Below, piece by piece: positions 16,140 to 60,450 of a stretch of DNA of 64,000 nucleotides. This DNA comes from Mobula birostris (lineage: Eukaryota). The position numbers and the translations under genes were made by a program. Within the stretch, counting starts at the first letter, position 1, and the number at the start of each line of letters is the position of its first letter. The notes under the pieces are model-generated. The model had not been told where the DNA came from and did no database searches. It worked only from the letters and a program-made list of their open reading frames with translations. The DNA lies in contig NC_092380.1 of assembly GCF_030028105.1 (NCBI RefSeq), forward strand, positions 69,995,717-70,059,716, read 5' to 3'.

Positions 16140-17640
16140 TAACATGCGCGAAGGCGATCACTGGTGCCAGTGAGAGAGGGAGGACCTGCTGCCAATACCG
16201 AGAGCACGGCTGGGGAAGCCGCGGGTCAGGGAACTGCCGGACACTGGAGTCCGTCAGCCTCCCCTATCTAGTTACGGTCATGATTGGCGGCGGCAGCTGA
16301 AGCTGCTGCTGGTGGACGACATCGTGCCCTCCCCTCCCTTCACATCCCCTCCCCTCGCGTCCTTCCTTAGCTGATGAGCAGAGCCGGGCAGAGTGGGACT
16401 GCTCTTCTCCGCCTCTCTCGCCGTGACTTCGGCTGAGTTCAGACGGGCAGTCGGCAATGGGCCGGGGATGTTGGCCAGAAAGGACCTCGTCCCCGAGGAG
16501 TATGTACTGCGGCTGGTGGAGGACGTGTCGCGGCCGCGCTACCGGGAGAAGCAGCGCAAGGTACGCTTCGTCAATAAGAACGGCGCCTGCAATGTCGCGC
16601 ACACCAACATCCGAGAGCAGGGCCGCTTCCTGCAGGATGTCTTCACCACACTGGTGGACCTCAAGTGGCGACATACACTGCTCATCTTCACTATGAGCTT
16701 CCTGTGCAGCTGGCTGCTCTTCGCCATGATCTGGTGGCTGATCGCCTTCGCGCACGGCGACCTCAACGGCGCCGCGCCGCCCGCCGTGCCTTGTATCACC
16801 AGCCTGCACTCCTTCACTTCAGCCTTCCTCTTCTCCATCGAGGTGCAGGTCACCATCGGCTTCGGCGGCCGCATGATCACCGAGGAGTGCCCGGCTGCCA
16901 TCACCGTTCTGATCGCGCAGAACATCGTGGGGCTGGTCATTAACGCTATCATGCTGGGCTGCATTTTCATGAAGACGTCGCAGGCGCACCGGCGCGCCGA
17001 GACGCTCATCTTCAGCAAGTTCGCCGTCATCTCGCCGCGGAACGGCCGCCTCTGCCTCATGTTCCGCGTGGGCGACCTGCGCAAGAGCATGATTATCGGA
17101 GCCAGCATCCGCATCCAGGTGGTGCGGCGCACGACCACGACCGAGGGTGAGGTGCAACCACTGCGTCAGATCGACGTGCTGCTCGACAACCCGGTGGGCG
17201 GCGGTGCCATCTTCCTCGTCTCGCCGCTCATCATCGCGCACGTTATTGACCGCGACAGCCCCCTCTACCACCTGACGGCCGCCGACCTGCAGCGCCAGGA
17301 CTTCGAAGTGGTCGTCATACTGGAGGGGGTGGTCGAGACGACTGGCATCACCACCCAAGCCCGCACCTCCTACCTGGCCGACGAGATCCTGTGGGGGCAC
17401 CGCTTCGTGCCGGTGGTGAGCGAGGACGATGGCCGCTACTCGGTCGACTACTCGAAATTCGGCAACACTGTGAAGGTGCCCACGCCGCCCCTCGGCGCCC
17501 AGCAGCTGGAGCAGGAGCAGGCCGTCGGGGGCGAAGGACTGGTCGCCGCCTTCGACATTTCGCCCGGAGTGAGGAGGAGGTCCTCAACCTCCCAACCCAA
17601 TGATTCGTGACCCCAGCACCACCTCTCCCCCAGGCCGACG
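16140..17640. promoter_or_regulatory. CpG island covering the KCNJ11 5' region and the whole CDS
   Basis: Abrupt change to GC-rich, CpG-dense sequence within an AT-rich, CpG-poor background. Boundaries are approximate. Confidence 0.8.
16468..17610 (+). CDS. KCNJ11: ATP-sensitive inward rectifier K+ channel Kir6.2, 380 aa, intronless CDS
   Basis: MLARK...PEEYVL start, TIGFG filter, short extracellular loop ([13 protein letters not shown]), [29 protein letters not shown] and an RXR motif (RRR, 17572-17580). The intronless CDS and these residues match Kir6.2 rather than Kir6.1. Confidence 0.95.
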
Positions 17641-18254
17641 GGTGGCAGGGACGAGATCCCAACACCAACCAGGCAACTCTTCCAAGCTTTCCCAAATCGT
17701 GTTTCCCCAGGGGGTTTTGTTTGGCCATTTTGCATCTACTGTATTTAAACGTGTTACAATTTTGTAAATAGAATTTTGCTAAAGAAAACTGATAAGAGAC
17801 ATTAAACTAGACTATTGGTAGCGCTGGCGTGGTTAGGTTTAAGTACTAAAGTTAACAGTTCTCTATACTGATTGTAGTAGCTGTTGATCAATCTAGTGGC
17901 CAGCCATTCTATTTTCTTCTTATTGTAACTTTAATGGAGGATGGCAGACCAACAAAAGGTGCATTGCTACCATCTACTGAGTTAGAGCGTGGAGCAAAGA
18001 AACAAGAAGTTTACCCACTAAATACAGCCCCCTCCCCACCAAAACTCAAATAATATAGTAATCTAATGCTTTTCAGAAAGTCAAATTTTGAACAAGGAAT
18101 TATTCAACCTAATGTGTGAACTATGTAAACATGCAAGTATAACTACTGTCCTTTTATACTCATCTCCCAGTTGATTTTGCACCATACACTGAATTTTACA
18201 GAAATGCCCTCCTTTGTTTGCCTTATCTGAACTTTGTTGCCACAGTCAGGAGAA

Positions 18255-18467
18255 CGTGCAGATGCTGGAAATCTGAGCAGCACACACAAAAGTGCTGCAG
18301 GAACTCAGTAGGCCAGGCAGCATCTATGGAAAAGAGTACAGTCAACATTTCGGGCCAAGACCCTTCTTCAGGACTCAGGTGTCCTGATGAAGGGTCTTGG
18401 CCTGAAAAATTGATTGTACTCTTTTCCATAGATGCTGTCTGGCCTACTGAGTTCCTGCAGCACTTTT
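18255..18467. mobile_element. Fold-back element of two head-to-head Penelope pLTR ends, each with a hammerhead core
   Basis: Arms about 18288-18374 and 18381-18467 are near-perfect reverse complements with a 6-nt spacer. Cores at 18340-18375 (-) and 18381-18414 (+). Confidence 0.8.
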
Positions 18468-21400
18468 TAAGTTATGGTTTTCACCTCTCTTTTATGCAAA
18501 GGCACCACTACATTTATGTCCTTAATTTTAAGTGATTGCTTGGCTAGAATGTCTGTCACCTCATCTCCTTCAACTTCAACTTGGGTAGGGCCCCATAAGA
18601 ACTGATTACACAAACATAGACCCTGCTGCCGTAACAGATGTTGTCCAATCTCAATAGGAATGTCCAGCCTATAATCTGAAATATCTGTTTTAATAAATGT
18701 CAAAACTGAGAACAAGTCAGAGCACAGGAGTACAGAAGCAGGGTGTACTCCTTCTACTCATTTCCAAGCTAAAATAATAACAATCATCTCAGATGTGAAT
18801 AGTGATACATATACTATGATAGTCTTCTTAATAGTCAGCGGAGTCTTTGGAACATAACAGAAATGTCTGAGCGACCTGTTACTGGATCATTTGAGCCATC
18901 TATATAGATATGTAAGAAGCCATAATATCTGCCTTGCATATTGCTGAATTACATGTGCCATTGGTAAGCAATCATTCTTCATCTTGATCTTTTAAAGACG
19001 TAAATTAACCACACACAAAGGGAAAAACCATGGAATGAGGTAAACTGTGTCCATAATCCACATTAAACAACCCAAGATTTGGTGCCCATTCATTTCCCAT
19101 CCACCCAAAACTGAAGATATTATGAATGCAGTGCTCCCAACACTTTATTAATGCTGCCAATGTTGGATGACCAACTTTATGTCCCATTATGTTAACCCAG
19201 TTAACCACTGGTAACTGTAATCTGCATAGATATAAAGGTAATGCAAATTGGGGATAATGCAAAAATTGGGGATGATTGAGCTTGAACTAGCCGTTCTATT
19301 TCAAAGCTCCTGTGGAGCTTAAAGGGAACTTTCACACTAAATGCCCTTTAAGGTTTGACCTCGCATTTGAATTTTGATTGACAAACCACTGGCCCTCTCA
19401 ACAATAAAGGAAGACTCTGCACATTTCACTGCACCAGCTAGCTGGCTTTTAACACTACCACAAGACAATCACAGGAATTTTCTGACACTCAGCTTTCAAA
19501 ATGTAAATACTCTCAATTCACCACTTGCAACCGGAAATATGCTCACTCCTACACAGAATTAACCAGCTTTCAATTCTATAAGTATGTTTGCAACTAATGT
19601 ATTACAAGTGCATAAAGTACATTTCAGACTATTGGCTTGAGCAAGAATATGTAATAATTGATTCAGCAATAATTGATAGACCCCCCCTCCATTGAAATGT
19701 TAGGATTCTTCATCAAGCATTAGTAATTTAACAAACTTAGCCATGTCCTTCGCTTTGGTAATGCTACAGGATTAAGGATGATTTGCTTCATGTCAAGTTC
19801 CCTGGGTTCTGTGGTAGCTAATGAAGCTTATTTTGGCATTCCTCGGTACTAGATAAAGCAAGAAGCTGAATAGTTGAATACATGGTACATCCCTTCTGTC
19901 TTTTACATTGTGTACCTATCAGCTGGGCGCAAAGTTCAAAAAATACTGCTCTCCATTTCAAGACAATAGTTCCCAGGCAGAAGTGTCACTAACATCTTTG
20001 AATCACTTCCTCTGTCCACCTAGCAATTTATTGCTTTTGCAAGGTTGGAGTGGTGTGTCTGATTCTAATATTGAGCATATGAATGATGTGGCTTGTCCAT
20101 TCGAGCTGACTGAGTGCAGTTCAGTCCTCAATGCTGAGAGAAAATATTGGCATTAATCTGTTTTTTTTTTACTGGTGGACTAGATATTGTTGTTTGTGTC
20201 CTCCTGCTGTAGGTGATTACATCTTGGAATCATCCTGGAGGGTGGGATCATTGCTGCCTAGTAAACCATGAACCACATCACTTCAGACAACCAAATGCTG
20301 AAGGTGTCATGCACAGGTTTTAGTAAAATTCATGCTGAATGTAATCCTTTGGACAGAGCTGAAAGCTGAAACAGTCCATATAAGAAGTGGTCCATATTTT
20401 TCATGGTTTTGATGTAAATTATTATGGTCAGGAACAGGAGGCAATTTAGTAGAGTGAGGCATATTGGTATTGGACTTGTGTAGATGTTTGATGTAAGACA
20501 CATTCTCAGGTGTGCTTCAGTGAACAATCAGCCATGATCCGGAGCTAGGCCTCTGAACATAGGCACATTTGCCTAGTTCGGTGTTGAATGTCGGGGTAGT
20601 GGTGTCGGAGTGCAGGTGAATAGGTTTAACATTTTCCCATTTATTCTTAGATTAACTTTGCTCCAGTAGTTAAAATGTAGCCTTATTGAGAGAAAGATCG
20701 AGGAAAGGGTTCAACAAACAATATAGCCTTGTGTTAATAATATCAGTAGATCAATAAACCAATCCAATATTGCAATTGCACACTGTTACACTGCATGCAT
20801 TTGCTTTTTAATCCTATGAAATGGCACTGTCTAAATCACATGTATTCACCAATTGTGGAAAACATAAGTAAAATTTTATAACTGAAGAAAGGCTAATAAA
20901 ACACCTGATGGCATTTTTGAAGAGCACATGCAGAGGACGACACGACATTTTTAACATACAAATGTAGCTTTAAGTACCTAAGAATATCTATGACACTATA
21001 GGGAAAATTTGTATATTGAGGACTTACTGTACATTTATTTCATTATTGTTGAACTGATGTTTCCTACCATGCCCTATTTACAAGTATTTATAAACAATTC
21101 CAGAAAATTGAAGAGTGAAGCAATAATTTGTAGATATTGAAACTATACTTGAATGATTGAAATTAAATCATGTTAATTCTGTAATAATTTTGATACTCAG
21201 AATTGCCAATAATAAAGTGGCCACCCAGGAAAGTGCACTGGAATGTGATGACTAAAAATACATTTCAAGATTTATATAAACATTAAATACTTCAATCTTT
21301 TATATTTCACGAACTTTTCAGGGACAAAGGGTGGATTCTGAGAGGATCAGTTTCAAATCAATGTTCTTGAGGATTTAGTTTGAAATGGGAAGAATGGTTT

Positions 21401-22507
21401 AAACAGAGGTTCATTTAGAAAGACCCATTTTCTCTGTAATAAGGGTAATTGTGTTTTAATTCCTACTGTTTCTTATTAAAGTAATGAGAATCTGCAAACA
21501 AAAAACAGAATCGCTATGTATTTTTAATAATATCCTATCCAGATTCCCATGAAAAATTTCCTCTTTAACTTACATTCAATAGCTTTATTCAGGACCTACA
21601 AACACTAGACATTGCAACCATATAAGGAAAATTTGGAGTATTATTGATTCCTGAATCAGGTAGTCCATGATAATTAAAAGCATAAAATTGGAGCACTGGG
21701 GTGAAATTACCAGAGTTCTCAAAATGGTGCTTGTTTTAAAGATTAAAATAAAACAATGTTTTCTTGATTCACAAAGACTGTAAATATTGAGAACCAGTTG
21801 GTCTGATCTGCACCTGCAGCATAAGTGCTCCCATATAAAAAAAAATCCACAAAAGGATTGCAAGCTATTTATTGTACACACTTCTTAATGCATTATACAA
21901 AGAGATTTTCAGGTTTAAAAGTTTGTACATTTGTTGTTTTTCCCAATCTTCTGAATCAATAGCTAAGTAGTAAGTTAAATATTGCCAGCATATTTACCTT
22001 TAATGAACCATGAATTATAGTTTCTGTAAGGAAACAGAGTCAGAATTGAAAATTCTACAAAGAAAATGAGTATCATAGAAGAATGTGTTGACATTGCATG
22101 AGCTAATGGTGCTAAATTAAGATCCATGAAAATGTACTGTGTACAAATAACGCACTTTAATTGCATTGTTGTTAACAATAATAGTTTGTAGAAATTAAAT
22201 TTTATGTTCCACATCTTTTGCATGGAATACTGTTGAAAGGTCATCCAAAAGATCTTTAATAGCTGAAACAAACAATTTATAACATTCCAGATAATGATGG
22301 TAATAAAAATGTTTTAGAGATTTTAATCTGTATTTCAAACATGAAAGGGATTGAAGAATAAAAAACCCTCTATATTGAAAACAGAATAGGCGACAGAACT
22401 TTCTGGAATATCCCATAGATGTAATCTTGTCTTTCTTGCAGCTAATCACGTCAACAGTATTGTTTAATTTAGCAGCACAATTATTAATCCGCATTTCAAA
22501 TTTACGG

Positions 22508-23764
22508 AACACACATCAAAGTTGCTGGTGAACGCAGCAGGCCAGGCAGCATCTTTAGGAAGAGGTGCAGTCCACGTTTCGGGCCGAGACCCTTCGTCAG
22601 GACTAACTGAAGGAAGAGTGAGTAAGGGATTTGAAAGTAGGAGGGGGAGGGGGAGATCCAAAATGATAGGAGAAGACAGGAGGGGTAGGGATAGAGCCAA
22701 GAGCTGGACAGGTGATAGGCAAAAGGGGGACGAGAGGATCATGGGACAGGAGGTCCGAGAAGAAAGACAAGGGGGGGGGGACCCAGAGGATGGGCAAGGG
22801 GTATATTCAGAGGGACAGAGGGAGAAAAAGGAGAGTGAGAGAAAGAATGTGTGCATAAAAATAAGTAACAGATGGGGTACGAGGGGGAGTGGGGCCTAGC
22901 GGAAGTTAGAGAAGTCGATGTTCATGCCATCAGGTTGGAGGCCACCCAGACGGAATATAAGGTATTGTTCCTCCAACCTGAGTGTGGCTTCATCTTTACA
23001 GTAGAGGAGGCCGTGGATAGACATGTCAGAATGGGAATGGGATGTGGAATTAAAATGTGTGGCCACTGGGAGATCCTGCTTTCTCTGGCGGACAGAGCGT
23101 AGATGTTCAGCAAAGCGGTCTCCCAGTCTGCGTCGGTCTCGCCAATATATAAAAGGCCACATCGGGAGCACCGGACGCAGTATATCACCCCAGTCGACTC
23201 ACAGGTGAAGTGTTGCCTCACCTGGAAGGACTGTTTGGGGCCCTGAATGGTGGTAAGGGAGGAAGTGTAAGGGCATGTGTAGCACTTGTTCCGCTTACAC
23301 GGATAAGTGCCAGGAGGGAGATCAGTGGGAAGGGATGGGGGGGACGAATGGACAAGGGAGTTGTGTAGGGAGCGATCCCTGCGGAATGCAGAGAGGGGGG
23401 GGAGGGAAAGATGTGCTTAGTGGTGGGATCCCGTTGGAGGTGGCGGAAGTTACGGAGAATAATACGTAGGACCCGGAGGATGGTGGGGTGGTAGGTGAGG
23501 ACCAGGGGAACCCTATGCCTAGTGGGGTGGCGGGAGGATGGAGTGAGAGCAGATGTACGTGAAATGGGGGAGATGCGTTTAAGAGCAGAGTTGATAGTGG
23601 AGGAAGGGAAGCCCCTTTCTTTAAAAAAGGAAGACATCTCCCTCGTCCTAGAATGAAAAGCCTCATCCTGAGAGCAGATGCGGCGGAGACGGAGGAATTA
23701 CGAGAAGGGGATGGCGTTTTTGCAAGAGACAGGGTGAGAAGAGGAATAGTCCAGATAGCTGTTT
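22508..23764 (-). mobile_element. 5'-truncated Penelope-like element with 14-bp TSD
   Basis: GIY-YIG motif VIYCVRCSRCGLLYIGET...RFAEH...VATHF. TSD tttcaaatttacgg at 22494-22507 and 23768-23781. Confidence 0.88.
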
Positions 23765-24314
23765 GCGTTTCAAATTTACGGGCAAGGTTTAATATTTTTT
23801 AAATATTTAATTTCTAACAAAAGATATCCAGCTGCCAAATTATTAAACAGTCAATATAATGTTTCAAATTAAGTTACCTGTGAAATTCTTGTTTTACCCT
23901 TACGTTAGTTAGTTCTGAAGATGTTACATATTCTTTACTGTAACAATTCACTCTCATTGTTTTCTTCATTCAATGCAAGATTAGCAAATTATGATTTATG
24001 GTCCACAGCACACAGAATTTTCCTTAATCAGATTATGTTATTGTCTGTTGAGTGCCAACCCTCACAAAAATGTCACAATGCTTGAATTGCTTTGCAAACC
24101 AATGTGCTGAGAACTCAAAATCTGACCTCTACAGTCTAAGTACTGTCATTACAGAATAAATACCCACTAGTTTTGCAGCGTGGAACTTAAATACATTTTG
24201 ATATTCAGCAAAGGAAGCTAAATTCTACCTGTGTCATAGATTCTGGTTAATTGGACTATCCATTCATCACGGCAACAGCTTATTTTGGGAAACTCTTAAA
24301 AAAACAAACCAGTT

Positions 24315-25990
24315 CCCCTCTACCACCACTCTCCTCTGTCTAGCAGAATTAGTCCTTACTCTTAATAATTTCTACTTTGGCTCCTCCCACTTCCTCCAAA
24401 CTAAAGGTGTAGCTATGGGCACCCGTATGGGTCTTAGCTATGCCTGCCTTTTTGTTGGCTTTGTGGAACAATCCATGTTCCAAACCTAATCCGTCCCCCG
24501 CTTTTCCTTCGCTACATCGACGACTACATTGGCGCCGCTTCCTGCACGCATGCTGAGCTCGTTGACTTCATTAACTTTGCCTCCAACTTTCACCCTGCCC
24601 TCAAATTTACCTGGTCCATTTCCGACACCTCCCTCCTCTTTCTTGATCTTTCTGTCTTTATCTCTGGAGACAGCTTATCTACTGATGTCTACTATAAGCC
24701 TACGGACTCTCACAGATACCTGGACTATTCCTCTTCCCACCCTGTCTTTTGCAAAAATGCCATCCTCTTCTTGCAATTCCTCCGTCTCTGCCGCATCTGC
24801 TCTCAGGATGAGGCTCTTCATTCCAGGACAAGGGAGATGTCTTCCTTTTTCAAAGAAAGGGGCTTCCCTTCCTCCACCATCAACTCTGCTCTCAAATGCA
24901 TCTCTCCCATTTCACGCACATCTGCTCTCACCCCATCCTCCCGCCACCCCACTAGGGATAGGGTTCCCCTTGTCCTCACCTACCACCCCACCAGCCTTCG
25001 GGTACAACAAAAATTCTCCATAACTTCCGCCATTTCCAACGGGATCCCACCACCAAGCACATCTTTCCCTCCCCTCCCCCCCACATTCTGCTTTCCGCAG
25101 GGATCACTCCCTACGTGACTCCCTTGTCCATTGGTCCCCCCATCCATTCCCACTGATCTCCCTCCCGGCACTTATTCTTGTAAGCGGAACAAGTGCTACA
25201 CATGCCCTTACACTTCCTCCCTCACCATCATTCAGGGCCCCAGACTGTCCTTCCAGGTGAGGCGACACTTCACCTGTGAGTCGGCTGGGGTGATATACTG
25301 TGTCCGGTGCTCCCGATGTGGCCTTCTATATATTGGTGAGACCTGACACAGACTGGGAGACCGTTTCGCTGAACACCTATGCTCTGTCTGCCAGAGAAAG
25401 CAGGATCTGCCAGTGGCCACACATTTTAATTCCACATCCCATTCCCATTCTGATATGTCTATTCATGGCCTCCTCCACCGTCAAGATGAAGCCACACTCA
25501 GGTTGGAGGAACAACACCTTATATTCTGTCTGGGTAGCCTCCAACCTGATGGCATGAATATTGACTTCTCTAACTTCCGTTAATGCCCCTCCTCCCCTTC
25601 TTACCCCATCCCTTATCTACTTATTTATTTCCTTTTTCTCTCTCTTTTTTCTCCCTCTGTCCCTCTCACTATAACTCCTTACCTGCTCTCCATCTTCCTC
25701 TGGTGCTCCCCTCCCCCTTTCTTTCTCCCTAGGCCTCCCATCCCATGATCCTCTCCCTTCTCCAGCCTTGCATCCTTTTGCCAATCAACCTTCCAGCTCT
25801 TAGCTCCATCCCTGCCCCTCCTGCCTTCTCCTATCATTTTGGATCTCCCCCTCCCCCTCCCCCTCTCAAATCTCTTACTATCTCTTCTTTCAATTAGTCC
25901 TGACGAAGGGTCTTGGCCCAAAACCTTGACTATACCTCTTCCTATATATGCTGCCTGGCCTGCTGCGTTCCACCAGCATTTTGTGTGTGG
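24315..25990 (+). mobile_element. Penelope-like element (RT C-terminal part, GIY-YIG, pLTR)
   Basis: GVAMGTRMG, RYIDD, VYYKPTDSH, VIYCVRCSRCGLLYIGET. The hammerhead core at about 25896-25931 has a G12 to A change. Confidence 0.87.
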
Positions 25991-27229
25991 AGCTAAATTG
26001 AGAAAATTACCAGGATTCCCTTCTGGGATTTGGGGCAGAAAACTTGCCAAACAGGTTCTAGATAGTATAAGTCACATGCATTTGTGTGGCTGTTAGATGC
26101 TGCACTATGCTTAGAATGAACAATTTTTAAATAGAGTCAGTTTCTTGTGTTTGTGTACAAAAGGTAGTGATTTTTATCACTAATATATATGCAAGAAATA
26201 AACAGCAAGACAATTCAGAACTGCTTTGCTCACTGCGGTTTCAAGCATTCAGACTTGGAGGTGTCAGAGCGGGAGTGAAAATGAAATGATTTCAATACTT
26301 CAGCAAGTTAGGAACTAGAAGAATTTGAAGGCATTGACAATCATCTTGACTGTTACAATAAAAATGAAATTTTGGAGGATGCAATCATAGATAGCATTAC
26401 ATGAAGGATGTCCATTATCTGTACTAGGTGGCTGCACTGATTTTGTTCATTGCATACTTTAGATGAATTCCTCTGTCAATGACTATTAGTTATTAACTAA
26501 TTAATAACTAATACAGCTCTGTAGAACTATTGGCAGTGTTTTACTTTGTTCTGTATTTCATTTAAATATATAAATTGTTACTCAGTTTGTTTCTTATATC
26601 TTTTTAACTATTTCAAAATAGTACAACGGAATATTTTCAGCTTTGTTATTCTCCATTTGAAATTCTTTGCTTATCATTATAATAAACCATCTATCCAAAA
26701 TGCTAACTTCACAAAATCTGAAGTTTTAAGTTGCAAAGAAATAAGTGGAGGAATGTGATGGATGGGATTGTTTTGAGAGCCTGAATAGATTCAATGGACC
26801 GAATAGCTTCCTCATGAATAAATGTTGGGAATAAAAAGATAATCATGGTCCTATTAATCGCTTTCTGATATAAATTCAAACTTAAAGAGAATTTTTCAAT
26901 TTGATTCCCAGGTGGTTTAAACTTTATTATATTTTATCGTTCATAAATATTTAAAGACACAATTAAAAATTAGTTATGTACATAAATATTTATTTGTATG
27001 TTAAATTCTTCACTAGTAACCTATCTTTTATCCTAGAAAAGAAAGGAGATCATAAATTCATTGCCATGAATAAACCAGTCTGCGGTGGAGCAAAATAAGT
27101 CAGATTTGTTCAAGGTACAAATAATAATGTAAAATATATAGTGCTTGTTTATCTCATTGTAGTGTTTGAACAAGTTTAAAGTTGTTTATCAAAATTATAG
27201 ATCTAAAAATTGCATAGTCTGGATGATGG

Positions 27230-33036: not shown

Positions 33037-33344
33037 TTAAATCTGTAATGTGAATGTCTTTTCTACAATATCATCGGACGGTGCATGTCGAATTTCACAA
33101 ATATAATTTTTTGAATCTCCTGTTACGACAATTGGCAGTTCTGTAATTGTGGAGTACAGTCCATTTTCATTCATTTCCGGTACTTCTACCACTTGCTGAT
33201 CCTTCAATGTCTTTGATCCTTGTGTCCACACTACATCTATATCCACTGGGCAAAAGTGTTCAATCCTGCAAGTAAGAGTGGCATTTCCACCCATTTTCGG
33301 CTGAACAGGAGTACACTTGATTTCTGATACTTCAGGAGGCACAG
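33037..33344 (-). CDS. NCR3LG1: B7-H6-like exon 10: post-TM IgC1-type domain 6, ending at the stop codon
   Basis: atttccatag|CTGTGCC...ATTTAA. AVPPEVSEIKC...LTCRIEHFCP...VW...NGLYST...YICEIRH...TFTLQI*. Exons 1-10 total 2898 nt = 965 aa plus stop. Confidence 0.87.
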
Positions 33345-36243: not shown

Positions 36244-36552
36244 CTTTCAGGGGAAGTTGCATGTGTTTTTTGAATTCATTTTTAGAATGGTCTTTACATA
36301 GAAAGACTAACTCTTTTCCAAAGTCTTCTGCGATCACTACAAAATTAAGGCAACTCTCTATATTGTAAGTTTTCTGAGGGGTACATACAAAATCTGAATT
36401 AGTTACTCCTATTTTCACAGGCTCAGCTCCTTTGTACCACTCAAAAGTAAAATCTTTACTTGGAAGATCATACACCCTATAAGACACAGATAAATGATGA
36501 CCATACAATGGAATCTTTGGCTCAATGTTGAAGTCTGAAAATCTCGGTGCAC
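36244..36552 (-). CDS. NCR3LG1: B7-H6-like exon 9: degenerate post-TM Ig domain 5 (canonical Cys pair absent)
   Basis: ttcattgtag|GTGCACCG...AAAG|gtgagt, 309 nt, phase 1-1. GAPRFSDFNIEP...LSVSYRVYDLP...FEWYKG...TYNIES...LVFLCKDH. Confidence 0.8.
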
Positions 36553-38923: not shown

Positions 38924-39250
38924 CTTTAAGAAACAATTGAAAGCATTGGTTCTGGGGTTTTGCAGACAAATTTGAATGATAAGCTTCAACTCTGAATTCA
39001 GCTTGATGATCAGCAGAGCTTGAAATCAACGTTAATTTGGTGACTTTGTTGTATAAACCATTTTCACTTTTTAATTCTTCATTAATGATTCCATATTTTG
39101 TATTTTCATTTATTCTCACGTTATCTTTGAACCAATCAATTTGAATTTCCTCTGGATAAAACTCCTTTATTTCACAGGCCAAGGTCAATGCCTTCCCAAT
39201 TTCAGGGTTGACAGGATCACAGGTAATTTCATTTATTTTGGGCAAACATA
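38924..39250 (-). CDS. NCR3LG1: B7-H6-like exon 8: post-TM IgC1-type domain 4 (F-strand Cys lost)
   Basis: tctttatag|TATGTTTG...AAAG|gtgagt, 327 nt, phase 1-1. LACEIKEFYPEEIQIDWFK...NGLY...FRVEAYH. Confidence 0.88.
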
Positions 39251-39505: not shown

Positions 39506-41756
39506 CCATAGAACCATAGAAACTACAGCACAGAAACAGGTCTTTTGGCCCTTCTTGGCTGTGCCGAACCATTTTCTGCCTAGTCCCACTGACGTGCACA
39601 CGGACCATATCCCTCCATACACCTCCCATCCATGTATCTGTCCAATTTATTCTTAAATGTTAAAAAAGAACCCGCATTTACCACCTCGTCTGGCTGCTCA
39701 TTCCATACTCCCACCACTCTCTGTGTGAAGAAGCCCCCATTAATGTTCCCTTTAAACTTTTCCCCCCTCACCCTTAACCCATGTCCTCTGGTTTTTTTCT
39801 CCCAATGCCTCAGTGGAAAAAGCCTGCTTGCATTCACTCTATCAATACCCATCATAATTTTATATACCTCTATCAAATCTCCCCTCATTCTTCTACGCTC
39901 CAGGGAATAAAGTCCTAACCTATTCAACCTTTCTCTGTAACTGAGTTTCTCAAGTCCCAGCAACATCCTTGTAAAACTTCTCTGCACTCTTTCAACCTTA
40001 TTTATATTCTTCCTGTAATTTGGTGACCAAAACTGAACACAATACTCCAGATTCGGCCTCACCAATGCCTTATACAACCTCATCATAACATTCCAGCTCT
40101 TATACTCAATACTTTGATTAATAAAGGCCAATGTACCAAAAGCTCTCTTTACGACCCTATCTACCTGTGATGCCACGTTTAGGGAATTTTGTATCTGTAT
40201 TCCCAGATCCCTCTGATCTACTGCACTCCTCAGTGCCTTACCATCAACCCTGTATGTTCTACCTTGGTTTGTCCTTCCAACATGCAATACCTCACATTTG
40301 TCTGTATTAAACTCCATCTGCCATTTTTCAGCCTATTTTTCCAGCTGGTCCAAGTCCCTCTGCAGGCTCTGAAAACCTTCCTCACTGTCTACTACACCTC
40401 CAATCTTTGTATCATCAGCAAATTTGCTGATCCAATTTACCACATTATCATCCAGATCATTGATACAAATGACAAAAAACAATGGACCCAGCACTGATCC
40501 CTGTGGCACACCACTAGTCACAGGCCTCCACTCTGAGAAGCAATTCTCTACTACCACTCTTTGGCTTCTTCCATTGAGCCAATGTCTAATCCAATTTACC
40601 ACCTCTGCATGTATACCTAGCGACTGAATTTTCCTAACTAACCTCCCATGCGGGACCTTGTCAAACGCCTTACTGAAGTCCATGTAGACAATATTCAGTG
40701 CCTTCCCCTCATCCACTTTCCTGGTTACCTCCTCCAAAAACTCCAATAGATTGGCCAAACATGACCTACCACGCACAAAGCCATGTTGACTCTCCCTAAT
40801 TAGTCCCTGTCTATCCAAATGCTTGTAGATTCTGTCTCTTAGTACTCCCTCCAATAACTTACCTACTACCAACGTTAAACTTACTGGCCTATAATTTCCC
40901 GGATTACTTTTCGATCCTTTTTTAAACAACGGAACAACATGAGCCACTCTCCAATCCTCCAGCACCTCACCTGTAGACAGCGACATTTTAAATATTTCTG
41001 CCAGGGCCCCCGCAATTTCAACACTAGTCTCCTTCAAGGTCCGAGGGAACACCCTGTCAGGTCCCGGGGATTTATCCACTTTAATTTTCCTCAAGACAGC
41101 AAGGACCTCCTCCTTTTCGATCTGAACAGTTTCCATGATCTCACTACTTGTTTCCCTTAATTCCATAGACTTCATGCCAGTTTCCTTAGTAAATACAGAC
41201 GCAAAAAACCTATTTAAGATCTCCCCCATTTCCTTTGGTTCCGCACATAGCCGACCACTCTGATCTTCAAGAGAGCCAATTTTATCCCTTACAATCCTTT
41301 TGCTCTTAATATACCTGTAAAAGCTCTTTAGATTATCTTTCACTTTGACTGCCAAGGCAACCTCATGTCTTCTTTTAGCCTTCCTGATTTCTTTCTTAAG
41401 TATTTTCTTGCATTTCTTATACTCCTCAAGCACCTTATTTACTCCCTGTTTCCTATACATGTCATACAACTCCCTCTTCTTCTTTATCAGAGTTGCAATA
41501 TCCCTTGAGAACCAAGGTTTCTTATTCCTATTCACTTTGCCTTTAATCCTGACAGGAACATACAAATTCTGCACTCTCAAAATTTCTCCTTTGAAGGCTT
41601 CCCACCTACCAATCACATCCTTGCCAGAGAACAACCTGTCCCAATCCACGCTTTTTAGATCCTTTCTCATTTCTTCAAATTTGGCCTTCTTCCAGTTAAG
41701 AACCTCAGCCCTAGGACCAGATCTATCCTTGTCCATGATCAAGTTGAAACTAATGT
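39506..41756 (-). mobile_element. Young 5'-truncated CR1 LINE; ORF2 RT region broken by one nonsense codon
   Basis: ORFs 40333-41742 and 39580-40317 are in the same frame, separated by TAG in place of TGG (EK*AEKWQM). Motifs KSPGPD, NYRPVSL, QHGF, YMDFSKAFD, VPQGSVLGP, FADD; (TTCTATGG)n tail. Confidence 0.93.
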
Positions 41757-42482
41757 AATCTTTCTAATCAAAAGCCCCATGAGATGTATTTTACAGATCT
41801 TTTCAAAAAATAACAAGAATTAATCCAGAATGAATGGGTGCACTACCGTAGGGTGGTTATCAAGACTTTGGAACGTTACCTAGCATTATACATCATCAAC
41901 CAGAATTGCATCTTTAAGATTTTCAGAAATAGTTAATGCTCAGTCAGGCGATACATGCTGAATATCATTATTTGTGTTTTTCAGAAATAGGATTTTTAAT
42001 ATTCCTTGTAATTTTATCATTACCCAGTCCACTTTGAAACTGATCAGTAACGTCATTCAGTATTAAGCATTCCTCTTCAATGTAATCTAATTATTTAACA
42101 GCAAGATTATTTTTCCATGGCCAAAGATTCCTACATTGCAAAAGGAACCCGAAATCAAGAGGTACTCCAGAATCTTCAAGAGTCTCTAAGGCATGAAAGA
42201 GGCAAGTAAGTGTAAACAGAGTCCTGGCAAGCAGTCTAGCTATATAATTACATCTACTAATTACACTTACTTATTGTCCTACTGTGTTTAGAGTACTATT
42301 ATGTTCCCAAGTGTGAGGAACTGGAGTATCTACTTTGCTGACTAGACTCATTGTGCAGGAAAAAGGAATGTTGACTGAAAACTGTGTGAATGCAATGTAC
42401 AGAATTAAAACATAGATAACTTATAACAAAAAGCTCTATATTGTTTAAATATAGTAAGTTCATGACAAGAAAATAAACATAC

Positions 42483-42794
42483 CTAAACTTTCAGGAATAT
42501 ATTCCACAAACTTTGGAAATAAAAGGGTCTTGTGATTAACCTGACATCGGTATTTACTCTCTAAGTCCAATAACGTTGGAGTTACTGTGCAAGTAGTGGT
42601 TAATTCATACAATTTGTTGTCAGGATTCTCAATTATTTCAGATGTTTCAAAGTCCATTATCGCCTTCTTATCTTTGAACCACTGGACAGTAATTTCTTTA
42701 GGATAAAATGAATGCACGTTGCAAGAAAGAGTCAACTCTTTGTCTATTCTAGGGTTCACTGGGCCACACAGGATGGGATTAAGTGAAGGAAATG
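42483..42794 (-). CDS. NCR3LG1: B7-H6-like exon 7: post-TM IgC1-type domain 3
   Basis: ttttgcag|CATTTCC...TTAG|gtatgt, 312 nt, phase 1-1. LSCNVHSFYPKEITVQWFK...YRCQVNH. Confidence 0.88.
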
Positions 42795-44023: not shown

Positions 44024-44380
44024 CTTTTACATCCAGCTTAATACATTTTTCTTCTGGATGTTTCAAACTCACGTGATCCACTTCACAGAAATACTCATCA
44101 CCATCATCTTCTTGTACTGTTGCTTTAAAGGTCAACATGCTGTAGACACTGTAAGTGTTGCCAGGAAAACTAAACTCTTTCACATTATGATAATATCGGC
44201 CAACAGAGGAAGTTACTTCATCTTCGGTGTCCATCAGGAGTGATTTCTCCCCTTTTATGTTTCTATACCATTTGATTACTAAAGGACGGGGCTTGAAAAA
44301 ATTTATTGGACATGTCAGCATCACTAAACTGTTATGCTGCACAACATGAGGTATAATTATGTCGGACAATTTAGGAGCAA
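44024..44380 (-). CDS. NCR3LG1: B7-H6-like exon 6: post-TM IgC1-type domain 2
   Basis: tctctttag|TTGCTCC...AAAG|gtaact, 357 nt, phase 1-1. IAPKLSDI...LTCPINFFKP...WY...TYSVYSML...YFCEVDH. Confidence 0.87.
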
Positions 44381-46000: not shown

Positions 46001-46414
46001 TTCCATCAACACGTAAGCAGATGTGTTTTTCCTCTGTTCCAGTCGGATGCCACACTCTACATATGACTTCTACTCTGTCATCCATTGTTAGATCAGGATA
46101 AACTTCAACAGTGCTAGAAAGGCTGTATGTTCCATCACCATTGTCCTGGAAATTTGGTGTGCGGAGTTTCCAATTAACCAGAGTTTTATTTCCTAGCTCT
46201 ATTTCTTGTATCCTGTTTTTTCCCCAAAAACTTCCTATCATCTGATATCTTTTGAATTCGCCAATTAATTTCTCTCTAGCATCACTTTGTGTCTTCAAAT
46301 ACCACCAAACATGAATCTTATTAGGTCGGAATCCAGACACATGGCAAGTGATCTCTGCAAGTTCTTGGTGTATAATTCGAGCTGGCAACTGAATATCTGA
46401 TAACTTGGGCGGAA
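46001..46414 (-). CDS. NCR3LG1: B7-H6-like exon 5: post-TM IgC1-type domain 1, with a long insertion
   Basis: tctctcag|TTCCGCCC...GGAA|gtaagc, 414 nt, phase 1-1. VPPKLSDI...ITCHVSGFRP...WY...NGDGTYSLSS...VICRVWH. Confidence 0.85.
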
Positions 46415-49308: not shown

Positions 49309-49425
49309 CTTTGTACATGTACCACATGTAAAGAAAAATTCCTACTCCTATTAGTAATACAGAGATGATAACGCTTGCAGTGACGCTTCCAACTATTGCT
49401 CTTTTGGATATTCGAATTTCTGCTT
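49309..49425 (-). CDS. NCR3LG1: B7-H6-like exon 4: transmembrane segment
   Basis: ttctttttaacag|AAGCAG...TACAAAG|gtaatg, 117 nt, phase 1-1, open. Encodes EAEIRISKRAIVGSVTASVIISVLLIGVGIFLYMWYMYK, with an uncharged hydrophobic run of more than 22 residues at the canonical post-C1 position of B7 proteins. Not in the ORF track. Confidence 0.85.
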
Positions 49426-50542: not shown

Positions 50543-50869
50543 CTTTCAAAGTCACTGCAGCATTCACGGTGTATGGTTCTGCAAAAGTCTTATGTGTCAC
50601 ACGACATCCGAAACTGCTGCCAATGTCTTCTTTCTGAGGTTCAAACCGAACTTCAGCGGTTACTTTGCATGTTCCATCAGGATTTTTGACTGGTGGGGTA
50701 ATGCATAGATCTGTTAACAGTTTTGTTTTACTTTGTGATGGACTTGACTGAAACCATTCCACGTTGCTTTCACAAGGATAATATCCATTCAAATGACAAC
50801 CCAAGAACATCTCGCCACCATTGCCAACTTCCACGACCTCTTTGGAAACAACAGTCACCGTGGGTTGTG
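50543..50869 (-). CDS. NCR3LG1: B7-H6-like exon 3: extracellular IgC1 domain
   Basis: ttacag|CACAACCC...AAAG|gttagc, 327 nt, phase 1-1. GCHLNGYYP...WF...PPVKNPDGT...EDIGSSFGCRVTH resembles the B7-H6 C domain (GFYP, TIKNMDGT, YQCVVRH). Confidence 0.9.
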
Positions 50870-52206: not shown

Positions 52207-52560
52207 CTAAAACTTCAAGCTTCATCATCACGAATTCTTTATAATCTGGTGGAATAACAACCTCACACTTGTACTCTCCACTATGTTTCAATGTAACATT
52301 TCTCAGTAAAAGTGACATGCTTCCATTTTGAATGGCGTTTGCAGACAGCTCAGCTTCTTCCCATTGAGATGTTATGTGCCCATCAGAATACACAAGGATA
52401 TTTACTCTTTCAGTACCCTGACTGAAAACCCATAAGATGCCTAAATTCTTTGGGTTCAATGAGATCCCAGTCAGGTTGGCAATTTCACACTGCAGAAGGC
52501 TATTTTTGTGAAGGATTACTTCCACTGGACCTTTATTCGTTTTCAGCTTCAAATTTCCTT
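52207..52560 (-). CDS. NCR3LG1: B7-H6-like exon 2: IgV domain
   Basis: atag|AAGGAAAT...TTAG|gtaagt, 354 nt, phase 1-1. LNPKNLGILW and GEYKCEVVIPP resemble human B7-H6 LNITSMGITW and GEYRCEVVVTP. Three N-glycan sequons (NLT, NGS, NVT). Confidence 0.9.
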
Positions 52561-54775: not shown

Positions 54776-57700
54776 GGGCTGCTGGCTGGGTGTAGTGGAG
54801 GGGTGGAGTATTGGAGAGACGACTGGAGTTCCGCCTGCAGTGTTTTGCTTTGGATTTTTGCTGGTTTTTCGGAAGACGAAGGCAGTTGGCTAAACAACTA
54901 GACTGTGAATGGACGGAGGATGGCAGGAGGAAGTGACAATTTGGGAAGTGAGTTAGAGATGGAAGATGGCGGGAAAGAGGAATGGAGCGTAAAGAGTAAG
55001 AAAAGAAAACAGAGGTATGAGCAGTCAAATTCTGAGGGGTCGAGGATGATCGAAAAAGGATAGCAAAAGAATGGAAAGAAGATTAGATTAAAGCAATTAT
55101 AAAACTGAGCAAATACGGGGCATCTTTCGGGGACTGGAACCTGATTCATGTGACGAAGGTAATTAACAAACTTATAGGCAAAGTCAAAAGAACCAAGGTA
55201 TTACGAAATGGATCGCTATTAGTGATATGTCGGGATAGCGCTCAGCAAGGCAAAGTGATAAGATTAAATAAAATAGATGGCAAAAAGTACCATGCTCAAT
55301 CCTCGACAATAGAAAGTGGACGAGAGGAGTTATTTCAGGGATACCAACAAAAGTTACTATGGATGAGATTAAACAGAATATAAAAGAAGCAAAGATTATT
55401 GAGGCCAAACGTTTGACAGTTACAAGAGAAGGAAAAAAGTATGATAGTTTATCGGTAATGATCAACTTTGATAGTTTATCGGTAATGATCAACTTTGAAG
55501 TGAGATTGCCGACTAAAGTTTATTTAGGGTATATGTGTTATGAAGTCAGAATATATATGCCACCGCCTTTAAGATGTTTTAAATGTCAGAAATTTGGGCA
55601 TATTGCGGCGGTCTGCAAAGGGAAACAAAGATGTGGGAGATGCGCTGGAGAACATGAATACGGGAAGTGAGGCGGGGGCTAGGCTGAAATGTTGCAATTG
55701 TGGCGAGGAATACAGTGCAGCTTATCGAAGGTGCATTATTAGCAAGAAGGCAGCTGAGATACAATATGTTAAAGTAACTCAAGAGATTAGTTACGCTGAG
55801 GCAGTGAAAGGTTTCGCTGAAAAGGAGAAAGTTATTAAGCAAACAAATACAGGGAATAACAGTGAACTGTGAGGGCTGTAATATGATAAATAAGGACACA
55901 CTAACAATGAATAGAAAAGATTTCATACTGCTTATGGTAGATGCAATTAACTGTTCAGTGCAAACAGACAAAAGAACAGAAAAAATTAAAATTATAGTCA
56001 AGTCTGCAGAAAAATATCTTGGTATTACAGGGCTTAGGTGGGAAGCAGTTGAAAAAATGCTGAATGGAGGATCAAACAGATCACAGGCAGGGGAGGTGGG
56101 ATCTTAATGGCAATATATATTTTGCAATGGAATGCAAGGAGTCTTATGGTAAATGGTCAAGATCTTAAAAAAATGTATCAGAACTTAAGGAAAAACCTCA
56201 AGTTTCTATGTATACAAGAAACATGGTTGAAGCCACAATTAGATTTTGTTTTACAAGGATATACAGCAATTAGGAGGGATAGAAGTAATGGCAATGGTGG
56301 AGGAGTAGCAATTATTTATAGCCAGATATAATATAGTCAACACAGGGCAGAAATACGAATCAATAATAATCAAAATATGGATAGGCAGAGAAAACTTGGT
56401 AATAATAAATTATTATAATCCATGTAGAAGACTAAGTAAAGATACATTAAACAAAGTGGGTGGTAGGATGCAAGGGAAAATAATATGGTGTGGGGATTTC
56501 AAAGGACACAGTACACTGTGGGGATGTAAAAATGTGGATGAAAACAGATTAATGATAGAAGAATTTCTCAATGATGAAAAACTGGCATGTATAAATAATG
56601 GAGAAGGTACAAGATATAATATATCCCAAAACACAGAAACTGCAATAGACTTAACATTTATAAGTAGAGAATTAGCAGGAATCAGTACTTGGAATGTATT
56701 AAAACCAACTACAGTAGGAAGTGATCACTATCCCTTACTCACAAGGATTCAGGTTAAAATAGAACAAAATGTAGGATCTAGAGTGTAAAGCTGGAAACTG
56801 AATGGGAGTGGGAGATATTTCAAAAAAGAAGCGAAGTAAGATGCACAAAGATTTTAGATGAAAATATATCAGATATAGAAGAAATGAATGACAAATTGGT
56901 CACAGCAATTATAAATTCGGCAGAAGAAACAATTCCGAAAAGTAAAGGTACAGGAAAGAGGGAAAATGTTCCATGGTGGAACTGTGAATGTAGTAGAAGT
57001 ATAAAAGCAAGAAATAAAGCATTTAAAATGTTAAAAAGACAACATTCAGTAGAAATATTAATACAATATAAAAGAGCACAAGCAGAAGTTCGGAAAACAA
57101 TCAGACAAGCAAAGCAAGCATTTTGGAGACAGTATTGTAACAAAATTGGAAGAGAAACTCAACTGTCCAAAATATGGGGCATGATAAGGGATAAGGAAAG
57201 TGAATGGTATAAGAAGTAGTAAAGAGATCCTGTGCTAAAAAGTAAGGACAAAATGGCAATTAACAATGTAGAAAAAGCAGCAATATTGGCAAAAGCTTTT
57301 GTAAACCTACATAGCTCAGAGAATTTGATGGTCAAGGCTAGACAGCAAAGGGAGAAGAGGCTTAAGCGAAATTCAGGAATGACGGACAAAAGAGCAACAT
57401 CTGAAGAAGTGCTAGATACACTTTTTAGCATAACAGAAATAGAAAGAGCCATTACGAATGCACGGCCAACTTCTTCTGGGAAGGATCAAGTATGGGGTAT
57501 AATGCTGAAGCATTTATCAAGAAGTGCATTTCTAGTTCTACAGAGACTGTTTAATAAAATATGGGAAATAGGTAAACTACCAACTGCATGGAAACATTCT
57601 GTTAGTGTTCCAGTATTAAAACCTGGTAAAGATTCATCAGACCCAACAAATTATAGACCAATTGCACTAACTTCACAGCTAGGTAAACTTATGGAACGAA

Positions 57701-59913
57701 TAATAACTGATAGGCTTACATACTTTCTAGAAAAAAGAAATCTTATTTCTCCCTACCAAAGCAGTTTTCGTAAAGTAAGAACTGCAATGGATTCAATAAT
57801 TAGCTTGGAATCTGAAATTCGGGAGGCTCAAACAAATAAAGAAATGGTCCTGGTGGTATTTTTTGACATAGAAAAGGCATATGATATGCTCTGGAAAGAG
57901 GGAGTGTTAATTAAATTGAAAGAACTAGGGGTGGAAGGAAAATTATATAATTGGGTTCTAGACTTTCTTTTTGGTCGAACAAATCAAGTCAAGGTAGAAA
58001 CAGAATACTCCAGGACATACTTGGTTGAAAATGGAACACCACAAGGTAGTGTCTGCAGTCCATTACAATTTTCCATAGTGATAAATGACATATTTGCACA
58101 AGTTGAACATAGTGTAGGGAAATCCTTATATGCAGATGATGGGGCTTTATGGGTGAGGGGAAGAAATTAAATTTATATACAAAGGAAAATGCAAGATGCA
58201 ATAAATAAAGTGGAAGAGTGGGCAAATAAATGGGGTTTCAAATTGGCTACAAGTAAGTCACGAGTGATATGTTTCTCAAGAAGTCACAAACCAGTTTCCG
58301 TGAAATTATATGAACAAAAATTAGAGCAGGTAAAGGTGATTCGATTCCTTCATTTGTTATTTGATGAGAAACTTACATGGAAAAAAGCAAATCGAGAATA
58401 TTACAAACAAATGTAAAAAAAAAATAACTTATTGAGGGGTCTTGCCCGACAGGACTGGGGTGCGAGCAGTATATCGCTATTAAATATTTATCAAGCCTTA
58501 ATGAGGGCTACATTGGATTATGGAAGTGTAGCATACATGTCAGCTGCAGAAAGTAATTTAAAAATGCTGGATATGTAGTGGTGCATTCAGAACATCACCT
58601 ATATCAGCTCTTCAAGTCGAAATGGGGGAAATGCCATTAAGACTTAGAAGAATAAAGCTAATGCTAAATTACTGGGTTAACATCATGGGACATAACTACT
58701 CACATCCAGCTAAAGCTATATTAAAAGACTCCAGGGAACATGATAAGGCAAGTTATAATAGCTTCGGGGGTGGAGCAGCACAAAAATATGGTCTACAGGA
58801 ATATAGCCCTACAGTTCCAATATCTGATGTTCCTCCATGGCTCTTTACAATGCATACAGGTTTTTATCTGTAAAGAGTCTAACTATGGAATCAAACAGAT
58901 AGCACACGAATATATAGACTTGCATTTTAGAAATGAACTTGTAATATTTATGGATGGATCAAAAGACCCTCGATCTGGCCACACAGGTATTGCAGTCTAC
59001 ATTCCTCAGTGCAAAACTAGTATCAGGAAAAGAACATCAAAACCATTTATCAGTGTATACAACAGAATTAATGGCAATTTTGAGTGCATAATCTTGGATA
59101 GAAGAAAATAATATCAAAAAGGCTGCAACCTGTTCAGACGGTTTATCTGCATTAACCTCAATCAAATCAAGAAAATCAGAAAGTAGACAGGATATTTTAT
59201 GCAAGTTATATACACTGACCAAAAATGGGGTAGAAGTAAGCTTTCTTTGGGTTCCTGCTCATTGTTGAGTGGAGGGTGATGAAAAGGTGGATAATATAGC
59301 TAAACAATCGCTCAAATCGTCTATAATAGAGGTCCAGATCCATCTTAGCAAAGCGTAAGTCAAGAGCAATATCAAAACACGTATTGAGGAGACATGGCAG
59401 AAGCATTGGGAAAGAGTGAAACAGGGAGACAACTGTACAAAATACAGAGGCAAGTTAGATACAAAAGAGTGTCAAGTGGATATAGAAAGACAGAAGTGAT
59501 CATCAGTTGTTTGAGAATTGGACACACTAGTCTTAATTACACATTACACAAAATGGGGAAACATCCAACTGCGTTGTGTGAATACTGTAATCAACCAGAA
59601 ATAGTTGAATATGTATTGATAAAATGTAAGAAGTATCAAAAAGAAAGTGAAGATGATAGGAGCGCTTAAGATAACAAAAAAAAACTGATGTGGGTATAGA
59701 AGACATTTTAAGTGAAAATTCAAGAGAAATCCAGATCTGTATCATGAAGTATCTGAAAGACAGGTTTATTATATAGAATATAATATAGAATAGAATATGC
59801 AATTCTGTTCCCTTCCCGTTTATCCAACGATCGACACTCCAGTCTAGCAGGTGGCGGTAATGCACCTTAAAGCTGGTTTGCCAACCACCATAAAACAACA
59901 CAAGAAGAAGAAG
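54776..59913 (+). mobile_element. Full-length, decayed I/Nimb-like LINE (gag-like ORF1; APE-RT-RNase H ORF2) in intron 1 of the B7-H6-like gene, antisense to it
   Basis: ORF1 from about 54959 with CCHC knuckles (RCFKCQKFGH, CGRCAGEH, CCNC). ORF2 from 56107: ILQWNARSL, CIQETWL, GSDHYP, YRPIALTS, FFDIEKAYD, GTPQGS, YADD, RNase H (FMDGS, FLWVPAH), C-terminal CEYC. (AAG)n tail. Imperfect TSD aactgcgc(a/g)gg(c/t)tg at 54762-54775 and 59914-59927. Many frameshifts. Confidence 0.9.
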
Positions 59914-59919
59914 AACTGC

Positions 59920-60450
59920 GCGGGTTGAAGCGCAGCATAACGAAACACGGTTCTGGGTTCCAGCTCACCGACGCCCCGGCCTCGATTCGATTCGATTCGA
60001 TTCGACTCGGCCCGGCCCAGCCCGGACAAGCACGGCCTGCCAGTCATCTCTCTTCCTTCGGCACTCCCCCCACCCCCCAGCCCAATCCGGTTTTCACCTG
60101 AAAGCGGCACCAGGACCGTCAGCGCGATCACCGCCGACACGATCCACAATGAACTCCCCGTCCAGCCCATGACCGTCGGTCTTCTACCGTCGGCTGGTTA
60201 GCCTTCCTCCCTTCTGCATTCGTTTCACTTTCGCTCCGGAAAGGGCGGGGGAATCTGCGCCCACAGCGAGAACAGCAGAACCTTCCGTTGAAGGGCAAGC
60301 CTTCTCTTCAGAGAGATGGAGACGTCGCCTTTCCGAGAGGAGAGAAAAAGATGCAAAACTTCCTTTCTCAGACACACACACGACCTCCTTTCCTTGGAGA
60401 AAGAGACCTTCATCCCAGAGACCGGGGCAGCTCCTCTCCGAAGACACCGA
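59920..60450. promoter_or_regulatory. CpG island / probable promoter of the B7-H6-like gene
   Basis: CpG-rich block around exon 1, with GC-box-like aagggcgggg near 60241. Boundaries are approximate. Confidence 0.65.
60098..60170 (-). CDS. NCR3LG1: B7-H6-like gene exon 1: signal peptide
   Basis: ATG...MGWTGSSLWIVSAVIALTVLVPLS, then G|gtgaaa donor. 73 nt, phase 1, inside a CpG island; joins exon 2 in frame. Confidence 0.8.

Follow-up and report, generated by a model that had tools for sequence, protein, structure and literature searches.

The manta ray (Mobula birostris) gene that contains the 117-nt exon at 49309-49425 encodes a protein in which a signal peptide, a V-set domain, a C1-set domain and a transmembrane (TM) segment are followed by six further C1-set immunoglobulin (Ig) domains. 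We consider it reasonably probable that this protein is a type I membrane form of B7-H6 with the six further domains in the cytoplasm, skipping of the TM exon being a possible minor or regulated event. The V-C1-TM-Ig-array architecture itself is real and old. The manta gene is annotated but uncharacterised, and its post-TM array is more surprising than the splice switch between cytosol and secretion that a sequence-only reading of the same DNA had proposed; that reading had noted the array as well but centred on the switch. A full-text literature search for Ig domains after the TM segment in B7-H6 relatives found no description, and an earlier description is possible.

The gene lies on the minus strand of the window (the whole 64,000-nt stretch of DNA analysed here), which has no runs of N. 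Its recorded span is 27,134 bp (60170-33037), and its coding sequence consists of a leader exon and nine further exons, the TM exon being the fourth of the ten:

60098-60170, minus strand: exon 1, start codon and signal peptide (73 nt, ends in phase 1)
52207-52560, minus strand: exon 2, V-set Ig domain (354 nt, phase 1-1; Pfam V-set, E 1e-9; best PDB matches human B7-H6)
50543-50869, minus strand: exon 3, membrane-proximal C1-set Ig domain (327 nt, phase 1-1; Pfam C1-set, E 1e-10)
49309-49425, minus strand: exon 4, stalk, predicted TM helix and YK juxtamembrane residues (117 nt, phase 1-1)
46001-46414, minus strand: exon 5, post-TM Ig3, C1-set with an insertion of about 40 aa (414 nt; Pfam C1-set)
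44024-44380, minus strand: exon 6, post-TM Ig4, C1-set (357 nt; Pfam match)
42483-42794, minus strand: exon 7, post-TM Ig5, C1-set (312 nt; Pfam C1-set, E 9e-16)
38924-39250, minus strand: exon 8, post-TM Ig6, C1-set (327 nt; Pfam match; F-strand Cys lost in rays)
36244-36552, minus strand: exon 9, post-TM Ig7, divergent C1-like (309 nt; Pfam C1-set below threshold, E 0.04; B-strand Cys lost in manta)
33037-33344, minus strand: exon 10, post-TM Ig8, C1-set (ends with TAA at 33039-33037; Pfam match)

The joined CDS (P0178) translates into 965 aa identical to RefSeq XP_072128562.1/XP_072128563.1, which is annotated as 'uncharacterized protein' of Mobula birostris. Pfam recognised the V-set in exon 2 and the C1-set in exon 3 and in five of the six post-TM exons, with a weak C1-set match for Ig7. 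The manta chain stops after Ig8 without a further hydrophobic segment, and it shares the C-terminus ...TFTLQI with its orthologues. The stop codon of the last exon (33037-33031, minus strand) falls exactly at the donor position of the other Ig exons (TAA/gtatgt), as if this exon had once been an internal cassette. In white shark, isoform X1 is extended by 14 aa at its C-terminus.

Two LINE-type elements were found within the introns of the gene. Reverse-transcriptase ORFs lie on the gene's own strand in the Ig5-Ig6 intron (39583-41763, minus strand; Pfam RVT_1, E 3e-28), and a second LINE with Exo_endo_phos_2 and RVT_1 ORFs lies antisense in the 7.5-kb first intron (55087-59666, plus strand). 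Elsewhere in the window an interspersed repeat is present in at least five copies on both strands (4859-5134, 14689-15115, 18143-18532, 22467-22896 and 25682-26093), and its ORFs share the motif ...PDEGS(R/W)PE...AAWPAAF.... The ORFs at 22925-25115 and 5150-5401, which lie beside this repeat, had no Pfam match.

Exon 4 is read from 49425 to 49309 and has 39 codons with phase 1 at both ends. Its acceptor (...tctttttaacag/AAGCAG at 49425) follows a pyrimidine-rich tract and its donor is ACAAAG/gtaatg at 49309. The exon encodes first a short stalk with charged residues (AEIRISKR), then 29 uncharged hydrophobic residues and finally YK, together residues 252-290 of the protein. The C1 exon ends with ...TTG AAA G at 50543 and the Ig3 exon begins with TT CCG at 46414. 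Reading of these junctions confirmed what had been proposed from the letters alone, namely that skipping of the 117-nt, phase 1-1 exon would join AAA G to TT (K-V), keep the frame and leave a product of 926 aa (965 minus 39). Since phase 1-1 symmetric exons are the rule among Ig-superfamily genes, and all eight internal coding exons of this gene are multiples of three in phase 1-1, preservation of the frame is not special to the TM exon. The unusual feature is that Ig exons follow it.

To what family the protein belongs was judged from its V-C1 part and from its neighbourhood. In a sequence search of the PDB the top three matches of the V-C1 region were all human B7-H6 (E 1e-19, both domains), the next match being an antibody heavy chain (1e-12). 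In an AlphaFold2 (AF2) model built on 21 orthologues (mean pLDDT 78.9), the V-C1 pair matched human B7-H6 with a target-normalised TM-score of 0.86-0.90 and an rmsd of 2.3-2.9 Å. The single TM segment directly follows the C1 domain, as in human B7-H6. An intron-less Kir6.2 (KCNJ11) CDS was found at 16468-17607 (plus strand), convergent with the B7-H6-like gene; this ORF scored 610 bits to Kir6.2 versus 565 to Kir6.1, and lies inside a GC-rich block (58% GC). The human NCR3LG1 and KCNJ11 genes are adjacent in the same convergent arrangement, and the manta neighbour supports conserved synteny with human 11p15. The NCBI name NCR3LG1 ('natural cytotoxicity triggering receptor 3 ligand 1') is carried by the thorny-skate orthologue and by two frog relatives. 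On the strength of the PDB matches, the predicted fold, the KCNJ11 neighbour and the NCBI names, the best explanation appears to be that the manta gene is an orthologue of B7-H6/NCR3LG1 in an ancestral 'long' form. No NKp30 gene was found inside the window. The human-type Gag-like tail with ITIM, SH2 and SH3 motifs is absent, the post-TM region of the manta protein consisting of six C1-set domains; the Gag-like tail belongs to the lineage of the human protein and is not a defining trait of the family.

The distribution of the long architecture was determined by searching a profile of the six post-TM domains against 1.84 billion representative proteins, and 207 proteins scored below 1e-30. Direct orthologues of 941-974 aa were present in 21 cartilaginous fishes comprising sharks, rays and a chimaera. 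All 21 had the same order of nine coding modules, the same terminal residue block and six post-TM domains. Among the best 150 of the 207 representatives, 109 had one internal TM segment preceded by one or two and followed by 2-14 C1 domains; the named long-form members come from lungfish, coelacanth, bichir, sturgeon, caecilian and many frogs. Moreover, three skate RNA contigs (3.1-3.9 kb), assembled independently of one another, each carry the V-C1-TM-6xC1 order as one uninterrupted ORF; one of these contigs derives from SRR5172152.

Several members of the family showed peculiarities of their own. In frog members (P0001, P0002, P0003, P0013 and P0020) the C1 domains number up to 16 and the C-terminal tails are long and acidic. 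Some frog models have a signal peptide without a TM segment, others begin within a C1 domain without a signal peptide, and some of the frog models may be incomplete. The partly spliced skate transcripts P0199 and P0201 (Logan) end in a retained intron after Ig3 or Ig4 (e.g. ...KLDVKGNSN...), and these ends parallel the intron read-through at 44023 in manta.

The hydrophobic segment encoded by exon 4 has the properties of a membrane anchor. Its Kyte-Doolittle maximum over 19 residues is 2.47, and AF2 predicted a helix at residues 268-288. The exon has 39 codons across the 21 orthologues, with one sawshark isoform one residue shorter; its mean pairwise identity among them (63%) matches the level in the Ig domains, and the manta-skate comparison of this exon gave a dN/dS of 0.38. 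The segment (residues 252-290) carries small residues (G, S or A) at every third or fourth position and a conserved LYM-x-x-x-YK end. It is unusually conserved for a simple anchor, a pattern that suggests helix-helix packing with itself or with a partner.

Topology statistics were collected from the 12-aa flanks of the hydrophobic span in 101 non-redundant family members. The flanks contained on average 1.73 K+R on the N side versus 3.48 on the C side, the C side having more in 79 members and the N side in 12. The N-side (outer) stalk was acidic across the 101 members, and the median distance from the TM span to the next Ig domain was eight residues. The C-side excess of K+R together with the acidic outer stalk is the signature of a stop-transfer anchor whose C-terminal side would be cytoplasmic. 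The gene model and this topology reading agree with the earlier proposal that the TM-included product is a type I membrane protein.

The post-TM domains were then compared with extracellular C1 domains. In manta both canonical cysteines are present in four of the six post-TM domains (Ig3, Ig4, Ig5 and Ig8), and there are three post-TM sequons (NKT 366, NLS 745 and NAT 884). The sequence-only reading had given the same counts, which were borne out by the translation, and had regarded them as suited to a luminal isoform. This argument is weak, because three sequons per 675 aa is approximately the chance level and because the canonical Cys pair is kept less often family-wide. The pair was found in 55% (270/490) of post-TM domains, in 88% of pre-TM domains and in 100% (86/86) of the C1 domains of a control set composed of extracellular multi-C1 proteins with a C-terminal TM segment. 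Enrichment of sequons over shuffled sequences was 1.19-fold (z 4.1) in the post-TM part, 1.71-fold (z 11) in the pre-TM part and 1.78-fold (z 10) in the control. The manta orthogroup gave no clear signal (103 observed versus 95 expected post-TM, 53 versus 41 pre-TM). Across the family the core Trp was retained in 95% of post-TM domains, and the post-TM part was enriched in E and K and depleted in S, T and N. Together with the charges of the TM flanks, these family-wide features suggest that the post-TM domains reside mainly on the cytoplasmic side.

Among the 21 direct orthologues the canonical pairs of four post-TM domains are kept strictly. In Ig3, Cys314 was conserved in 21/21 and Cys409 in 20/21 sequences, and both Ig5 cysteines in 21/21. 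Altogether, the pairs of Ig3, Ig4, Ig5 and Ig8 were kept in 20-21 of the 21 across the shark-ray-chimaera split, a strictness equal to that of the V and C1 domains. Two non-canonical cysteines of Ig8 (C874 and C895) were conserved in 19-20 of the 21 orthologues, and in Narcine both are replaced, a hint of an additional disulfide; such a bond would require an oxidising compartment. Strictly kept Cys pairs, joint loss of C874 and C895 and sequons slightly above chance would be expected if a secreted form also matters. The array had a dN/dS of 0.46 (0.25 to 0.79 per domain). In the AF2 model its pLDDT was mostly above 80, with confident beta-sandwiches even for Ig6 and Ig7, which have no disulfide pair. 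By these substitution rates, the constant number of six domains in cartilaginous fish and the predicted fold, the post-TM array appears to be functional and not junk.

Whether the TM exon is skipped was examined in annotated isoforms and transcripts. Annotated isoforms of three relatives, namely a paralogue in a ray, one caecilian and one toad, are missing precisely the residues of the TM exon. In Hemitrygon akajei XP_072905590.1 (isoform X6 of a stingray paralogue) a 38-aa deletion joins ...LTVE to VPPK..., in Microcaecilia unicolor XP_030056930.1 (X3) the TM-exon residues are missing by an exact 37-aa deletion, and Bombina bombina NCR3LG1 isoform X2 is without the TM segment. All three are annotation models, that is, computational predictions. 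No TM-less isoform was found in the 11 clusters of 90% identity that contain manta and its direct orthologues (approximately 35 sequences), where such a form would be expected to fall into the same cluster, as happened for the isoforms of the three relatives. The TM exon was included in all three independent skate mRNA assemblies, and the TM segment was present in every direct-orthologue model and transcript examined. A search for partial transcripts with a C1-Ig3 skip junction (query residues 144-428) scored nothing. Judged by eye, the donor and the acceptor of the TM exon were no weaker than those of the neighbouring exons, and they gave no hint of a weak, regulated cassette. There was no excess synonymous constraint in the TM exon (dS 0.55 versus approximately 0.6 elsewhere).

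Of the proposed switch, the in-frame 926-aa product and the occurrence of TM-less isoforms (in three relatives) thus hold, but manta and its direct orthologues yielded no such form and the skate mRNAs include the exon. A role of the putative skip product as a secreted decoy for NKp30 is purely conjectural. Mammalian soluble B7-H6, which had been cited as a parallel, does exist, but in humans it arises by ADAM shedding or on exosomes and not by exon skipping (PMC6836727).

Ig domains past a TM segment look wrong at first sight, and they could have come from an annotation in which a B7-H6 V-C1-TM gene was fused in silico with a separate multi-C1 gene. However, no stop codon, leader exon or start codon lies between the TM exon and Ig3, the phase is continuous, and the same order recurs in the 21 orthologues and in 109 of the best 150 representatives. 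The skate mRNA contigs cross the junction, and since they carry the whole order as one ORF, the two-gene fusion is excluded as the source of the architecture; we regard an artefact of this kind as hardly credible. The hydrophobic stretch might also fail to span the membrane, leaving the whole chain luminal or secreted even with the exon included. The segment is rich in Ser, Gly and Thr, and its simple position-independent hydrophobicity sum is only about -1.5. The uncharged span of 29 residues with its Kyte-Doolittle value of 2.47, the helix predicted by AF2 and the positive-inside asymmetry with an acidic stalk in 101 family members all argue against this possibility, which we hold to be very unlikely. 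It would be similarly far-fetched to take a short membrane isoform as the working B7-H6, made by read-through of the TM donor and intronic polyadenylation, with the long TM mRNA as a by-product. Read-through at 49308 would add ten residues (GNVCVSVMNL) before a stop, and the sole AATAAA of the 2.9-kb intron is located at 49235-49230 (minus strand), 74 nt past the donor. But this is a single hexamer with a chance expectation of about 8% (AATAAA occurs approximately once per 1.3 kb on the minus strand), no short isoform was seen in databases, and purifying selection acts on the post-TM domains, which are read in frame with the TM exon.

A more serious alternative, although we still think it unlikely, is that the TM exon is a regulated switch and that the six domains do their work in the secreted 926-aa V+(C1)7 chain. 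The secreted chain would possibly be dimeric and act as an antibody-like soluble ligand or as an NKp30 decoy, and the membrane form would carry the domains as baggage. The TM-less isoforms annotated in three lineages, the strict maintenance of Cys pairs in four of the six domains, the joint loss of C874 and C895 in one lineage and the weak sequon enrichment (z = 4.1) are consistent with such a switch. So is the usual behaviour of C1-set domains, which pair and lie outside the cell; the closest relatives of known structure are Ig heavy chains, SIRP and UrIg2. On the other hand, the TM-less form is absent from the models of manta and its direct orthologues and from the skate transcripts, the splice sites of the TM exon are no weaker than their neighbours, and family-wide the disulfides have decayed and the sequon density is near chance. 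Moreover, over more than 400 My the TM segment and the array have stayed in one frame in 109 of the best 150 representatives, with no split into a secreted and a membrane gene.

According to the explanation that we prefer, a type I membrane B7-H6 with a cytoplasmic array, the TM exon would be spliced in by default, and the main product would be the 965-aa membrane protein with its B7-H6-like V-C1 head outside the cell. The six folded Ig domains would stand on the cytoplasmic side, starting about seven residues past the membrane. Omission of the TM exon would yield the in-frame, anchorless 926-aa V+(C1)7 chain, which would be secreted; such omission is probably a low-level or regulated event, the membrane protein being the main output. 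As a tentative extension, for which we claim rather less confidence, the ancestral B7-H6 may have been a type I ligand with a cytoplasmic array of folded C1-set domains (six of them in cartilaginous fish, as many as 14 in frogs) that was kept since the jawed-vertebrate ancestor and replaced on the way to humans. It is possible that, through skipping of the TM exon, these domains also enter the secretory pathway in the form of an antibody-like chain.

C1-set domains are otherwise a hallmark of extracellular antibody, TCR and MHC molecules, and no cytoplasmic C1-set domain is known to us. If the array is indeed cytoplasmic, it would be the first known case of C1-set domains working there, and it would represent a new type of signalling or scaffolding tail for an immune ligand. 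B7-H6 and NKp30 are among the oldest NK-type ligand-receptor pairs and, to our knowledge, only the short mammalian form of B7-H6 has been studied. If skipping of the TM exon is used, a single gene would be the source of a membrane ligand as well as of a long, secreted V+(C1)7 chain, and this would bear on the origin of secreted versus membrane Ig-like molecules.

The manta protein shares with human B7-H6 the order signal peptide-V-C1-TM of a type I protein and the KCNJ11 neighbour. The two differ past the membrane: the human protein (454 aa) has a Gag-polyprotein-like cytoplasmic tail with ITIM, SH2 and SH3 motifs (PMC2715080), whereas the manta protein has six C1-set domains. Shark UrIg2 (described in PMC12227049), IgW and IgNAR-type chains resemble the manta protein in having one V domain followed by 5-11 C1-set domains, and UrIg2 was among the AF2 fold matches of the manta protein. 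In those chains, however, the TM segment is C-terminal and all Ig domains are extracellular, whereas in manta the TM segment follows the first C1 domain. In addition, the V domain of UrIg2 is of the VJ type while that of manta has no J-like FGxG motif, and the UrIg and Ig-heavy-chain-like proteins of the control set have the canonical Cys pair in 100% of their C1 domains. Ig-superfamily receptors that skip a symmetric TM exon have the same phase 1-1 TM cassette and the same kind of in-frame, anchorless product, but only a short tail past the TM segment, whereas in manta 675 residues of folded Ig would change compartment. Extracellular-type beta-sandwiches are known to function in the cytoplasm in the FN3 domains of integrin beta-4 and in the cytosolic I-set Ig domains of titin and obscurin. 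The domains are of the FN3 or I-set type in these proteins, and of the C1-set type in the manta protein.
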